A stretch of DNA of 64,000 nt from Podarcis liolepis (lineage: Eukaryota): assembly GCA_965112155.1 (NCBI GenBank), contig OZ218110.1, one strand, 5' to 3'. The position numbers were made by a program, and so were the translations under genes. Of the stretch, positions 26,861 through 39,268 are shown piece after piece. The first letter of the stretch is position 1. Every line of letters begins with the position of its first letter. The notes beneath the pieces were generated by a model. It made no database searches, was not told the DNA's origin, and saw only the letters and a program-made list of their open reading frames with translations.

Positions 26861-27838
26861 CTACTTCTCCAGGGGCGCATAGTTCAGCAACTTTTCAATC
26901 AAATCCACGTGTGACAGGAGCATCCTCCGACAGCAGTAGCGCTTCAGGCCAAGGGCGTCCAACGCATCCCTGAGAGAGGGAACGGAAAAATGAGTGGGTG
27001 GTCTCAAGATTTTCTCTCTCTCCCTTTCTCTTGACTCGGATTGCCAATCTTTCTGTGGCCCTCTGCTCCTGTGCCTTTCATCAGCGGCCTGCTCTGGCCT
27101 GGAGACACAGATAAACATCCATGTCCTGTGTACTGAGTTAGCCAGTTTTATCCAATTTATGCCGCAATCAGAGGGCAGCAGCCCTGTATAGGGAAATGTG
27201 TGATGTTTTATTATGTTTTTGTATATGCTGGAAGTCGCTCAGAGTGGCTGTGGCAACTCAAGTCAGATGGGCGGGATACAAATAAAACAACAACAACAAC
27301 AACTGGAAGGAGTCCAGAAGCCATTTATAGAGATGGGGGAAAGCAGACCATTAAAACGTTACAGGTACAGTGGTACCTCAGGTTAAGTACTTAATTCATT
27401 CCGGAGGTCCGTTCTTAACCTGAAACTGCTCTTAACCTGAAGCACCACTTTAGCTAATGGGGCCTCCTGCTGCTGCTGGAGCACAATTTCCATTCTCATC
27501 CTGAAGCAAAGTTCTTAACCCGAGGTACTATTTCTGGGTTACCAGAGTCTGTAACCTGAAGCGTATGTAGCCTGAAGTGTATGTAACCCGAGGTACCACT
27601 GTATACTAAAAGGTTTCATCCAAAAAAGTCATGTCATAAAAATTATTATTATTATTATCTGTGATAACAGGATGGGGGGCTAGAGAGAAAGACAAGGTAG
27701 AAATCCTAGAAGATACAGCAAAGAGGCAAACCTGTGGACTCACCCTTCTGTGTATTCCGCCTGCAAGAGGCCCAGGTAGGCTTCCCACTTGTTGCCCACG
27801 ACTTTCCCGCAGGTGAAGCACCGAACTGGGATGATCAT
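26861..27838 (-). CDS. POLR2L: RNA polymerase I/II/III shared subunit RPABC5 (RPB10), 67 aa; POLR2L or a POLR2L paralogue
   Basis: Exons 27838-27744 (95 nt, donor GTGAGT) and 26969-26861 (109 nt, CAG acceptor) give [67 protein letters not shown], with the CxxC...CC zinc motif intact. A TAG acceptor at 27852-27850 lies 11 nt before the ATG. Minus-strand AATAAA at 26618-26613. Confidence 0.95.
27368..27601. mobile_element. Tc1/mariner (Tigger-like) MITE in the POLR2L intron
   Basis: TIRs CAGTGGTACCTCAGGTTA / TAACCCGAGGTACCACTG, flanked by TA on both sides. Confidence 0.88.
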
Positions 27839-28299
27839 TGTGAGGTGGCCTAAAAAGGAATGTATTTTGGGGAGGGAGAAACAGGAAGAGAGGCAAGTCA
27901 CCCAGGTTTCTTCCCTCTCTTCCCACCAAACCTTCCTGGGCTACCTAGCTATTCTTAGTGTTGCAGGAATTTCTCCGTTAACATTAGTTTACAGCAACTT
28001 GAATAAAATATTGTGGGGGTCCAGGTAAGTCCTGCCCCCACATAACTGATCACAGGATGCAGTGCACCCACACCGTTTGAATGGGAATACTCATCAACTT
28101 TGGGGGCGCGAGGCCCCTCAAATATTTTATTGTGGGGGACTCCAGCTCCCACCAACCCCAGCTGGCCTGGCCAATGGCCAAAGGTGATGGAAGCCGTAGG
28201 ACCCCCCCCCCCATCACCATCACCATCGTCCAGCCACGGGTTAACTGCTCTTGCTGCAAAGGTGATCGGGAGGTAAAAAGCCCACACATCTTAGGTTAA

Positions 28300-36000: not shown

Positions 36001-39000
36001 AGAGAGAGAGAGAGAGAGAGAGTTTACAGTACTTCCAACTGGTCATCAGTCACATCCTAGCAAATTCAGGTTGCTCAGCTAAAGCTGATTTTGAGTTCTC
36101 ACGCAACAAACCCACTTCCCTAATAGATTGGGATATTTTTGCAAGAAAGAGGTGGGGGAAAGGCGGTAGGAAGTGTGGGATGGCGCTTGCATCATGCATT
36201 GCCATCTAATCTGCCCACAAACAGGTCATCTGGAAGCGAATTTAGAGAGCTAAGAAACAGCCAGGGAGATTTCCCCCACTTTAAGCACCCTCATCCCATT
36301 TTGGAAGAGCAACCCCCGTGTGAGACTGATTTCTCCCCTTGCTTCCCAGTTTCGCTGCTGTGGGGTGCAGAACTACACAGACTGGTTTGAGGTCCGCAAC
36401 AGAACGTGGGTTCCCGAGTCCTGCTGCTTGCAGCAAAGTGACATCTGCCAAGTGGACAGCGCCAGCTGGTGGAAGGAGGTGAGACAGCAGCAGGAGTTGC
36501 CCTCAAGGAAGAGAGAATCCCCTACGGCTGTGGGTTCCAAATTGGGTTGTCCGCTGAAGCCCCCTCCAGGAATGCTTGTGTCCTGAGCAAGTGGCAAATG
36601 GCTAAATGCAGGGTCCAATTACCAAGACTGGCCTGCACTAAAACCCTCCAGCAGACCTCTCTCTCGGAGCTGTTGAGGTTGAGAGGGCCTTTGACACTCT
36701 GTCCTGCGACAAAAGTATCAGCTTCTGGCTTTTGACCGTAGAATCTCATCTCCCTCTCTGACCATACAACACACTCAAAATTACTTTTGTGCTGTTCTAA
36801 CTTCACGGCTTATCCCAGTGAATCCTGAGAATTGTCACTCAAGGAGGTGCTGAGACAGAGGTTTCAGAGGTCTGAGACTCTCTGCTTTTAACATTTTGTG
36901 CATTAAATGTTGAGATATTCCAGGAAGGAGGGAATGATGAAAACCAGAGGGGGAAGGGGTTCCTAGTCTTTGGTGGCCTATGAACCAGCATATGACTTTT
37001 ATGAAGCCCCCCAAAATTTCAAGACTAGCTACTCTGTGTGTCTTCTTGCCAGTAGCAATATGCAGTAAGACAGCGGGCCTTTGTGGACTGCTTTTCCTGA
37101 GGAAAGCGGCCTAGCCCAGTCCTCTTCTGATGTTTCAACCCAACTGAGTTTGGGTGACGGCTGCAGCGAAATCTTTGATTTGCTTCATTAATGCTGCTGC
37201 TCAAAGCTGTTGTGTTAATTTAACTCATCTTTTTAACTGTGAGATTTTCTTGCTCTTTTTTTGAGTGGGATGGCATATCTGCTTTATGATTTAAGGTTGT
37301 TTACACTTAAAGGTCGCTAATATAAATATATAAATATAAATAAATATATTTATATATTGAACTATAAATATATGGGGGACGGACAACAACACCTAGTCCA
37401 GGTTGTAGTGTGGATACATCCTATTTTATTTAGTTATCTTCCTCCCCTCCCCAATATATTTTACTCTCAAAAGACTTACATAAAAGGAGAGTGGCAGTCA
37501 GCCTATTAGCGTGACCAGTTACCAGCCTGGGTTGCTGCAGTTTTCACGATATAGGCAAATTAGACAGGTTCAGAAAAGAGCACTGAAGATGACCCGCTGC
37601 ATGGAAAATAAACCTGGGAAGAAAGGTTGAAGGAACGGGGTATGTTGACAGACTGAGAGGGGTGTGTGTGTAATAGCCCTCTTTGAGGAGAAGTGCTGTC
37701 ACATAAAGCAGAGGCAGGGAACTTCAGGGTCAAATGCAGCCTGCCAGGCCTATCTGTCTGTTGAAATTTCCCTCAGCCTCATCCCTCACTGGTGCTGCTT
37801 CGTATCTAGAGTGGTTTTGCCTGACTGTAGTACGTCCTTGAACTCTCCTAATGCCTGTTGCTTGTCTGGATGGAGGACAGAGGGGTGACTGTGCAGAAAC
37901 CAGTCTAGTTACTGTACAGTGGTAAAATTTACTTTCACTCCTTCACCCATCCTAGCCTGAAGCTCCCAGATAGTTGCCAAGAAGAAAATGCAGCCCTCCT
38001 GCTGGCAAAGGTTCCTGTTGCAGAAGAAAGGCTTGTTCACTTCAGCCCAGTGGATAAGAAGGGGGGACACTTTTAAGTTATAGAAGCTGATTTGGGCTGA
38101 ATATTCAGTTTAATATTCAACCCAAATATTCAACTGATTGATGGCAAGCGCAGTTCCACAATGGAACAAATGACCCAGAGTTCCTACTAGAAACAGCTTG
38201 CATGTTAAATAAACGTTAGATTAAATGGAAGATGACATTTTTTGGGTGCACAGGAGTGTGATCAACCCAGATCGGAGGCACTGCCTCTTCTTGCCAGTGC
38301 ACTCTGGTGACCATGTTTGTTTTGTGCTCTATTCCCCTAAAGCCCTGTTACGAGAAGGTGAAACGCTGGCTAGGAGAGAACATCTCAGCCATGGGCATCT
38401 TTGCCGCCTGCATCATTGTTGTCCAGGTGAGCAGGAAGGAACAGCCATGGGAGGGGACACGCCTGACCTGAGCAACTGCTGGGGCCGCTCTGGTGCAACA
38501 ACACACATGCCACCCATTACCATCAGCACAAGAACGGAAGGTGGGGTTGCCTGCAGGGGACCACAGAATAGGATGAAGCTATTCTTTCCAACACTGGCCA
38601 TGGTTCCACAGGGAGTAAAGAAATTAATTAGAAGCAACACGTAAACTGGTGCAATCTGTGCTTTCAAAAGGCATCCCCCTTTAGAAGACTGTCCAGGAGG
38701 ATGGTTTCCTGACTGGGAAAAACCACACAGAAGCTGCCCCTGCCACCTCCAGCTTGTACAAAATGGGCCAAGAAGCAGGGGACTGGGAAGCCAGATGCCA
38801 GGGCACTGGCTCATTTGTAGAGTCTACGCAGTTAGCCAATATGGGGCCTTTTAGAAGTTGTGGACTACAACTCCCATCAGCCGCAGGCAGCATGGCCAGA
38901 GGTCACAGGTGATGCGAGTTGTAGTCCAAGATATCTAGAGGGCAACCCATTGGCTACACCTGGTCTACACTGACAGGCAGAAGCTCTCCAGCCTTTTAAA

Positions 39001-39268
39001 CAGCCCTGCTTGGAGATCCTGGGTGGTTGGACCTGAGACCTTATGCTCAGCCTTCCTACCTTTTAGAGGCAGCGGCAAGGAGGGGAGTTCAGGAGGCAGC
39101 ATCTTAATTCCAATATTGTAAGGAAGTGACATGCTGGGCTGGGACTCTTCCGCCCCCACTTTTTTTGTTGTCTGTCTGACCTCCTTTATGTCTCTCCAGG
39201 TCTTGGGCATCGTTTTCTCCATGCTGATGTACTGCCAGGTGCGGCGGGCGGAAAAATACTACGACTGA
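33054..39268 (+). CDS. Tetraspanin of the TSPAN4/TSPAN9/CD53 subfamily (TSPAN4-like), 239 aa, 7 coding exons
   Basis: Exons 33054-33122 (MGVSRGCLLCVKVKMFVFNLIFW), 33877-34068 (LGGCGVLGVGVWLAVTQGRFATLSFSFPSLSAA...HRCLLLT), 34761-34835, 35848-35949 (FDRYAQSNLKEGLQLYETEGNVGLTRAWDVVQNE), 36350-36478 (FRCCGVQNYTDW...VPESCC...WWKE), 38343-38426 (PCYEKVKRWL...), 39200-39268 (VLGIVFSMLMYCQVRRAEKYYD*). All introns are phase 0. Four TM segments, CCG and PxSCC motifs. AATAAA at 39681-39686. Confidence 0.93.
35959..36022. repeat. Compound (AC)n(AG)n microsatellite 10 nt after a tetraspanin splice donor
   Basis: Read directly from the sequence. Confidence 0.95.
37540..37720 (+). mobile_element. Old CR1-type LINE 3' fragment; further degraded CR1-like pieces near 44985-45210 and 56700-57040
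   Basis: Degenerate GGTTCAGAAAAGAGCACTGAAGATGA...GAAAGGTTGAAGGAACGGGGTATGTT resembles the 3' end of CR1 ORF2. Confidence 0.45.

Follow-up and report, generated by a model that had tools for sequence, protein, structure and literature searches.

POLR2L (RPABC5, RPB10) is a core subunit common to RNA polymerases I, II and III and is treated as single-copy. The human protein is 67 amino acids long, carries zinc-binding cysteines in CxxC and CC motifs and is encoded by two coding exons. Its gene lies head to head with that of the tetraspanin TSPAN4, which has seven coding exons; both features recur in the locus described here. The gene order in this part of human 11p15.5 is CD151, POLR2L, TSPAN4, CHID1 and AP2A2 (PMC5024517), and on chromosome 12 TEAD4, TSPAN9 and PRMT8 are grouped in a single locus at around 3 Mb (PMC8903548). 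A further, TSPAN4-like lineage (hereafter T4L) was described in fish, Xenopus and reptiles by Huang et al. 2010 (PMC2965184, Fig. 4 note #2) and is treated, where that study discusses it, as an independent small-scale duplicate.

We analysed a 64,000-nucleotide stretch of DNA from the lizard Podarcis liolepis (‘the window’), in which a POLR2L-type gene (minus strand) and a tetraspanin gene (plus strand) form a head-to-head pair, with PRMT1 on one side and AKT1S1/TBC1D17 on the other. We favour the reading that the lizard has retained an ancient additional copy of the POLR2L and tetraspanin neighbours, lost in mammals and birds, and that the entire module was duplicated long ago, probably in 2R. 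Of the two genes, the tetraspanin has been described before: it is represented in the lineage note of Huang et al. 2010 (PMC2965184) and annotated by NCBI. The original prediction had allowed for existing ‘like’ annotations, and the lineage is indeed the ‘tetraspanin-4-like’ of NCBI and the tspan4b of fish. Our literature search found no paper on the second POLR2L copy.

Gene models and flanking genes

The POLR2L-type gene comprises two coding exons with gt/ag borders that together encode an intact protein of 67 amino acids. The first coding exon (27744..27838, minus strand; ATG at 27838, codons 1-32) and the last (26861..26969, minus strand; codons 32-67 plus the stop at 26861-26863) both score above the profile cut-off for the RPABC5/RPB10 family (Pfam PF01194, RNA_pol_N; E 1.3e-13 and 5.7e-14, respectively), and the protein has the 67-residue length and the zinc-binding cysteines (CxxC and CC) of that family. 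Its second exon is identical to human RPABC5 at 35/36 residues, and the whole protein at 65/67; the two differences are at residues 13 and 52, which are I13/A52 in human and V13/S52 in the window.

Transcription was assessed from bulk RNA-seq of a closely related species mapped to this locus, with reads only up to position 28953. Read depth was 25-131 over 26567-27011, covering the last exon and a 3'UTR that extends to about 26567, and ~40-87 over 27724-27901, covering the first coding exon; most stranded libraries showed the expected minus-strand direction. A further bin with depth ~32 (28614-28702), in which molecule ends stack at 28660, indicates a non-coding 5' exon at approximately 28614..28660 (minus strand) and a probable transcription start, the splice joints of this exon not being listed individually in a table dominated by joints from intron repeats. 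The start near 28660 falls inside a CpG island (28400..28900; GC 0.64-0.72, CpG observed/expected 0.6-0.86), and we conclude that the gene is transcribed from a CpG island. Its introns and its CpG-island 5' exon rule out an origin as a retrocopy. The original prediction had placed both genes at a shared CpG region, and this holds in part: the island (~28400-28900) does cover the 5' exon of POLR2L, and it may also serve the tetraspanin gene. A bidirectional promoter in the sense of two divergent starts in one CpG island, no more than about 1 kb apart, is thus a candidate here; no plus-strand RNA was seen over 28700-28953.

The tetraspanin gene on the plus strand is split into seven coding exons, all in phase 0 and bounded by canonical ag/gt sites, which give an intact reading frame of 717 nt (239 amino acids). 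Coding exon 1 (33054..33122) is 92-96% identical to most squamate T4L sequences and 83% identical to an extended Pogona model. Exon 2 (33877..34068), which encodes TM1, the small loop and TM2, shows 97-100% identity with lizard T4L, 89% with that of Crotalus and 67-70% with squamate TSPAN4. Exon 3 (34761..34835; TM3) is too short to have given a tblastn hit and matches the Naja orthologue P0002 by eye. Exon 4 (35848..35949) is defined by its splice borders and by tblastn to relatives, exon 5 (36350..36478) encodes the large loop with its CCG and PxxCC motifs, exon 6 (38343..38426) is defined by Pfam, splice borders and tblastn, and the last coding exon (39200..39268) is coding over 39200-39265, with a stop that ends at 39268. 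Exons 2 and 5 match the Tetraspanin family (Pfam PF00335) with 38.9 and 38.7 bits against a cut-off of 32.1 (E 9.8e-10 and 1.2e-9), and the translations of exons 5 and 6 contain a six-cysteine large loop (CCG, PxxCC, C, C), the pattern that appears in Table 1 of PMC2965184. The protein is probably an ordinary membrane-organising tetraspanin. An acceptor-like ‘ag’ lies 11 nt upstream of the ATG at 33054, and positions 30250..30520 (plus strand; tblastn E = 8.9; ORF 30220-30525) bear a faint resemblance to the N-terminal extensions predicted for the orthologues in Pogona and Naja, a weak lead to a possible upstream non-coding exon or promoter region.

To the left of the pair lies PRMT1 (approximately 4520..19110, plus strand), recognized from exon ORFs and from the Pfam families PRMT_C and PrmA; PRMT1 is its best match among solved structures (E 6e-30), with PRMT8 behind (7e-27), and an assembly gap (19845-19992) is found close to its 3' end. 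On the right are an exon of AKT1S1 (PRAS40; 47115..47726, minus strand; Pfam PRAS_NT, E 1.3e-30) and, head to head with it, a TBC1D15/17-type RabGAP gene (~49400..58070, plus strand; PH_RBD E 4e-13 and a weak RabGAP-TBC match), with a CpG island at 48600-49600. The gene models, Pfam matches and flanks thus confirm the predicted arrangement of intact, intron-containing POLR2L-type and tetraspanin genes that diverge between PRMT1 and AKT1S1. The first coding exon of the tetraspanin is 4.4 kb from the POLR2L-like start, and an intergenic assembly gap (28954..29103) lies in between, with the 5' exon of POLR2L (about 28614-28660) on one side and the tetraspanin exon at 33054 on the other. Since this gap interrupts no coding exon, the reading frame of neither gene is at issue; the adjacency of the two genes here does depend on the scaffold join across it.

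Lineage of the tetraspanin

In exon-by-exon tblastn comparisons the window tetraspanin was 88-100% identical to squamate ‘tetraspanin-4-like’ proteins (~88% overall to Rhineura T4L) and ~58-60% identical to squamate TSPAN4. It shares the tetraspanin fold and Pfam family of human TSPAN4, yet is only about 58-61% identical to it, belongs to a separate clade and has PRMT1 and AKT1S1 as neighbours in place of CD151, CHID1 and AP2A2 (PMC5024517).

A phylogenetic tree, in which the window gene is placed through the squamate proteins that match it at 88-100% rather than by its own joined protein, resolved a T4L clade (support 99/98) and a TSPAN4 clade (99/95) as sisters (95/95), with TSPAN9 outside; the tree did not include CD53, which would be expected as a fourth member of the family. 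The T4L clade spans sharks to squamates, with the sharks inside it, and is represented in sharks, ray-finned fish, coelacanth, amphibians, turtles, crocodilians, tuatara and squamates. None of its 54 proteins, in a tree of 134 rows, is labelled as coming from a bird or mammal (three are without an organism label); every bird and mammal match falls in the TSPAN4 or TSPAN9 clade. The predicted loss in mammals therefore holds among these proteins and extends to birds. The six-cysteine loop and the range of fish, amphibians and reptiles, without mammals, agree with the lineage as presented in the relevant parts of PMC2965184. Those parts give no neighbours for the gene, which here sits in a PRMT1-AKT1S1 block with a POLR2L partner of its own, and the clade recovered here includes sharks.

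Approximately unbiased (AU) tests, for which the groups were defined post hoc with the tree already seen, rejected a duplication restricted to tetrapods (tetrapod TSPAN4 and T4L held together; p = 5.6e-5) and one restricted to bony vertebrates, after the shark split (p = 0.012). The tree and these tests indicate that the split between T4L and TSPAN4 predates the divergence of sharks and bony vertebrates. The two tetraspanins also occupy separate loci in squamates, with T4L of Paroedura on a 31 Mb record and its TSPAN4 on one of 188 Mb. We therefore assign the window tetraspanin, on the strength of sequence comparison, to the T4L lineage (tspan4b in fish).

Orthology to TSPAN4 itself was considered for the window gene and rejected, its nearest squamate relatives falling in the separate, well-supported clade. 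The expectation that it would lie outside the TSPAN4 orthologues was thereby upheld by the tree and by the stronger of the AU results (p = 5.6e-5). Nor does the gene have the TSPAN4-orthologue neighbours CD151, CHID1 and AP2A2; those found here are PRMT1, AKT1S1 and the TBC1D17-type gene.

Two POLR2L genes

The V13/S52 state of the window POLR2L protein is also that of lamprey, shark and coelacanth. A second type, I13/A52, is carried by squamates, turtles, crocodilians and salamanders as well; in birds and mammals no other type was seen. Where both genes were located they lie on different records: in Crotalus adamanteus, the V/S gene (P0458) is on a record of 145.6 Mb and the I/A gene (P0459) on one of 359.3 Mb, and Pleurodeles (P0365 and P0438) and Alligator (P0376 and P0408) likewise have their two genes on separate records, the I/A type being on another chromosome in all three species.

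The two types appear to have different tetraspanin partners, as judged from identical record lengths rather than gene maps. The V/S gene and T4L share a record of 17,228,317 in Dermochelys and one of 172,207,807 in Latimeria, where their XP accession numbers are 22 apart; an I/A-like gene (T13/A52) and TSPAN4 share a record of 377,630,096 (377.6 Mb) in Ahaetulla, the one snake that allowed this comparison. The window gene, distinct from the I/A gene of reptiles and linked to T4L and not TSPAN4, thus appears to be a second POLR2L gene that has kept the ancestral protein (V13, S52). Because the two proteins differ at only two sites, one of which (site 52) flips between S and A within an apparently single cyprinid locus, the protein gives no date for the POLR2L duplication.

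Origin of the module

We regard it as probable that the pair in the window is the ancient sister of POLR2L-TSPAN4 rather than the counterpart of the pair on human 11p15.5, with a block copy in 2R as its most likely source. PRMT1, AKT1S1 and TBC1D17 are genes of human 19q13.33, a region probably paralogous to both 11p15.5 and 12p13; since the copy sits among genes of the 19q13.33 type, the head-to-head module would have been duplicated as a unit, with the second vertebrate genome duplication as the likeliest occasion. PRMT8 belongs to the TSPAN9 locus on 12p13, so that a linkage between a PRMT gene and a tetraspanin recurs in two of these regions. It lies there on the other side of TSPAN9, and the order PRMT-POLR2L-TSPAN, which the original prediction took for the ancestral linkage, is at most a candidate for it. 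A duplication older than the split between sharks and bony vertebrates is what the tree and AU tests indicate for the tetraspanin. The original prediction of a 2R paralogue pair is thus supported in part, by the age of the tetraspanin split and by the two POLR2L genes found in other species; the polymerase half may be equally old.

The pair could instead stem from an old small-scale (segmental) duplication and not from a whole-genome event, which would apply to both genes the view that Huang et al. 2010 took of the tetraspanin. The sister relationship of T4L and TSPAN4 is expected under either origin, and the lineage note of the 2010 study calls T4L ‘probably an independent duplicate of TSPAN4’ (PMC2965184). 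A segmental origin nevertheless seems unlikely to us when the T4L split is older than the shark divergence and when TSPAN4, TSPAN9, CD53 and T4L make up exactly four members. It also fits poorly with a copy that lies among PRMT1, AKT1S1 and TBC1D17, genes of a region probably paralogous to 11p15.5, and with the fact that the TSPAN9 locus on 12p13 contains PRMT8, which among solved structures is closest to PRMT1. The locus offers positional evidence that genome duplication gave rise to T4L as a fourth family member, in contrast to the small-scale duplicate of the 2010 study.

The two halves might also differ in age, with POLR2L arriving beside an old tetraspanin later and independently, either copied into the head-to-head position or homogenised by gene conversion. 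The near identity of the POLR2L proteins would permit this, and in medaka and axolotl the sole POLR2L record seen is on a different chromosome from T4L. We consider such an arrival very unlikely, however: the gene has introns and a CpG-island 5' exon of its own, its divergent arrangement is that of the human POLR2L-TSPAN4 pair, the V/S gene and T4L share a chromosome in turtle, in coelacanth and here, and it is the V/S gene that keeps the lamprey and shark protein state, the other copy having two derived residues. Hardest to credit is that this is the only POLR2L/TSPAN4 locus of the genome, translocated to its present position, or that a wrong scaffold join unites the two genes. The gap at 28954-29103 does separate them, and none of the records examined bridges it; yet the same conserved block continues on both sides of it (PRMT1 on one, AKT1S1 and TBC1D17 on the other), and turtle and coelacanth have the same linkage. 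A simple translocation is largely refuted by the position of the tetraspanin outside the TSPAN4 clade and by the presence of both loci in other squamates.

Beyond the block copy itself, we lean modestly towards a fuller history in which two ancient POLR2L sister genes, each in a paralogous region of its own, have stayed paired divergently with a TSPAN4-type gene ever since the genome duplications of early vertebrates, in which mammals and birds independently lost the copy with the ancestral protein, and in which T4L, rather than being a small-scale duplicate, completes TSPAN4, TSPAN9 and CD53 as the missing fourth. The locus is also a clear-cut case of two divergent genes that seem to have been retained as a pair twice, across several hundred million years.

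RNA polymerases I, II and III would receive an almost identical RPB10 subunit from either POLR2L gene, so that the second copy was more likely kept for dosage or divided expression than for a new protein function; a difference of two residues makes a large functional surprise unlikely. The existence of two RPB10 genes in many non-mammalian vertebrates is relevant to work with frog, salamander, turtle and lizard models, whether in knock-outs, in expression studies or in orthology tables.

The placement of T4L also corrects gene naming: ‘tetraspanin-4’, ‘-4-like’, ‘-7-like’, ‘-9’ and tspan4b all denote one lineage, and fish tspan4b is no teleost-specific copy of tspan4a. The database names of T4L proteins are inconsistent even among reptiles, with ‘tetraspanin-4’ used for Pogona, ‘-7-like’ for Dermochelys and ‘-9’ for Varanus.

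Gene content of the divergent pair and its flanks

The POLR2L-like gene lies on the minus strand and has two coding exons bounded by gt/ag (27744-27838 and 26861-26969). Together they specify 67 residues in a reading frame that was checked on the joined exons. In profile searches conducted exon by exon, both scored well over the Pfam RNA_pol_N cut-off, and the second exon matches human RPABC5 at 35 of 36 positions. The tetraspanin gene, a member of the 'TSPAN4-like' (T4L) lineage, lies on the plus strand and comprises seven coding exons (33054-33122, 33877-34068, 34761-34835, 35848-35949, 36350-36478, 38343-38426 and 39200-39265), all in phase 0 with canonical splice sites. 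Its 239-residue product matches the Pfam Tetraspanin domain and retains intact CCG and PxxCC loop cysteines. The pair is flanked by PRMT1 (plus strand; solved PRMT1 structures outscore PRMT8), by AKT1S1 (minus strand; an exon at 47115-47726 matching PRAS_NT with an E of 1e-30) and by a TBC1D15/17-type gene (plus strand; identified by profile search). All searches with sequence from the window used single exons as queries. The exon models and Pfam matches confirm the intact, intron-containing gene pair described in the original prediction, and the flanking genes are likewise those that it named.

The coding region of the tetraspanin is accompanied by a compound (CA)n(GA)n microsatellite (35955-36010), located in intron 4 directly 3' of exon 4. 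A CpG island at 48600-49600 separates AKT1S1 (minus) from the TBC1D17-type gene (plus), which form a second divergent pair in the window.

An assembly gap at 28954-29103 is positioned between the 5' exon of the POLR2L-like gene and the first T4L coding exon. No reading frame therefore crosses it, and the adjacency of the two genes consequently depends on a scaffold join. The presence of genes from the same conserved block on both sides of the gap, together with the same linkage in one turtle and in the coelacanth, argues that this join is correct. A second gap (19845-19992) is found near the 3' end of PRMT1.

A tetraspanin lineage distinct from TSPAN4

A profile-free search with T4L exon 2 and then a word search with the orthologue from Naja yielded two sets of squamate proteins. 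When compared exon by exon, the tetraspanin of the window is ∼88% identical overall to the squamate set annotated as 'tetraspanin-4-like' (with single exons reaching 100%) and ∼58-60% identical to squamate TSPAN4.

Phylogenetic trees, in which annotated orthologues represented the tetraspanin of the window and CD53 was left out, resolved the same two groups. In a careful 47-row tree the T4L clade (support 99/98) contained Callorhinchus, Pristiophorus, Latimeria, bichir, teleosts (as tspan4b), amphibians, alligator, turtles, tuatara and squamates, while the TSPAN4 clade (99/95) contained mammals, one bird, four squamates and frogs, as well as the 'tspan4a' proteins of bichir, gar and sturgeon. 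T4L and TSPAN4 emerged as sisters (95/95), and TSPAN9 fell outside them. AU tests, whose groupings were chosen with the tree already in view, rejected both a duplication of T4L and TSPAN4 confined to tetrapods (p = 5.6e-5) and one that followed the shark split (p = 0.012). The separate T4L clade and the exon identities rule out that the gene of the window is a TSPAN4 orthologue, and the placement of its orthologues outside the TSPAN4 clade agrees with the paralogy originally proposed. In a quick tree of 134 rows, none of the 54 proteins in the T4L clade (3 of them without an organism name) carried a bird or mammal name, and all bird and mammal hits fell in the TSPAN4 or TSPAN9 clades. The predicted loss in mammals is thereby borne out, and extends to birds.

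This half of the module is already published and annotated, under a variety of names. Huang et al. 2010 (PMC2965184) listed a TSPAN4-like lineage from fish, Xenopus and reptiles and regarded it as a probable small-scale duplicate. Proteins annotated in Oryzias, Astyanax and other fish as 'tspan4b' or 'tetraspanin-4' fall in the T4L clade, and the tspan4a of gar and sturgeon groups with TSPAN4 (fish proteins compared include P0152, P0133, P0230, P0183 and P0218); in the literature searched, tspan4b is mentioned only incidentally, in two papers. The bichir lineage did not undergo the teleost genome duplication, and since bichir carries both a T4L gene and 'tspan4a', the a/b names for tspan4 hide a much older split. 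Orthologues of T4L also go under differing database names: 'tetraspanin-4' in Pogona and Alligator, 'tetraspanin-7-like' in Dermochelys and 'Tetraspanin-9' in Varanus (P0157, P0041, P0164 and P0178).

Two POLR2L types and the origin of the module

The POLR2L-like protein of the window contains V13 and S52. The identical 67 residues are found in lamprey, whale shark, coelacanth, Pleurodeles, Dermochelys, Caretta, Alligator, Gekko kuhli and Crotalus adamanteus, and S52 is also present in partial models (second exon only) from Chrysemys and Ophiophagus. In contrast, mammals and birds display I13 and A52, as do gene models from Chelydra, Gopherus, Pangshura, Alligator, Crotalus horridus, C. adamanteus, Naja, Pleurodeles, Ambystoma and frogs; the Ahaetulla protein (T13, A52) is close to this second type. 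Three species possess both types on different records: C. adamanteus (V/S on a record of 145.6 Mb, I/A on one of 359.3 Mb), Pleurodeles (1624.8 and 1237.8 Mb, respectively) and Alligator (a 30.9 kb scaffold and a 30.8 Mb record, respectively).

As a check of locus-level orthology, translated 5'UTR read-throughs of V/S and I/A models from snakes, gecko and turtles were compared with the window and gave nothing above noise. The V/S gene is annotated without distinction from its I/A counterpart and, as far as the literature searched shows, is apparently undiscussed; a search on POLR2L as an ohnolog found nothing.

Cyprinid models (the set P0402, P0429, P0435 and P0439) share a translated 5' leader but not residue 52, which is S in Cyprinus and A in Carassius, Anabarilius and Labeo. 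In teleosts this site by itself is therefore not a lineage marker; either it flips easily or the copies in polyploid carp differ. Models from Scomber and Labeo (P0427 and P0439) are fused to a similar N-terminal stretch rich in lysine and alanine, probably an upstream gene merged by annotation.

Linkage in other species was deduced from identical record lengths and accession order. The V/S POLR2L and T4L genes reside on records of the same length in Dermochelys (17,228,317) and in Latimeria (172,207,807, with XP numbers 22 apart), while the I/A-like POLR2L of Ahaetulla and its TSPAN4 gene share a record length of 377,630,096. The I/A POLR2L and T4L genes of C. horridus are on different records, and in Paroedura T4L (31 Mb record) is separate from TSPAN4 (188 Mb record). 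Simple translocation of a sole POLR2L/TSPAN4 pair is largely refuted.

The human chromosomal regions 1p13, 11p15, 12p13 and 19q13 constitute a four-fold paralogous set, and human PRMT1, AKT1S1 and TBC1D17 map to 19q13.33. The human gene order on the TSPAN4 side is CD151, POLR2L, TSPAN4, CHID1 and AP2A2 (PMC5024517), and a single chromosome 12 locus at about 3 Mb comprises TEAD4, TSPAN9 and PRMT8 (PMC8903548). An old paralogous POLR2L/tetraspanin module, lost in mammals and birds, is well supported by these analyses. It might have arisen through local duplication, or the POLR2L/tetraspanin module may have been copied as a block by genome doubling. The copy in the window adjoins PRMT1 and PRMT8 is found at the TSPAN9 locus, while T4L brings the tetraspanin family to four members and separated from TSPAN4 before the sharks; we therefore favor block duplication by genome doubling, which these features fit better than local duplication. 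An origin in the second vertebrate genome duplication is likely but not proven, because the POLR2L proteins differ at too few sites to date their split, the tree spans T4L, TSPAN4 and TSPAN9 but not CD53, and linkage elsewhere was deduced from record lengths. The further suggestion that PRMT-POLR2L-TSPAN represents the ancestral order exceeds the evidence, since the genes around PRMT stand in a different order in the window and on human 12p13.

Transcription and the intergenic region

Raw bulk RNA-seq reads from a closely related species were mapped on 26300-28953 at 80% likeness. Coverage delineated a last exon with ∼290 nt of 3'UTR (26567-27011), the first coding exon (27724-27901) and a non-coding 5' exon (28614-28702), with molecule ends at 28660; the read direction over the POLR2L-like gene was the one that most stranded libraries would give for a minus-strand RNA. 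The probable start near 28660 falls inside a CpG island (∼28400-28900), in keeping with part of the predicted shared CpG region. The common promoter itself stays putative; in the reads, mapped up to 28953, no plus-strand RNA from the related species was seen at 28700-28953. The sequence at ∼30250-30520 bears a faint likeness to the N-terminal extensions predicted for the T4L proteins of Pogona and Naja, and might hold an upstream T4L start or exon; the Pogona match lies near 30400-30500.

The introns of the POLR2L-like gene harbor two very high-copy interspersed repeats (27190-27634 and 27991-28257), which resemble SINE-type elements. In DNA runs their summed contig depth climbs as high as tens of millions, and RNA reads cover both of their strands in the thousands. 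The transcribed 3'UTR of the gene also contains a tetranucleotide microsatellite (26707-26805; IYLS... in one frame), which was skipped as a repeat in read mapping.
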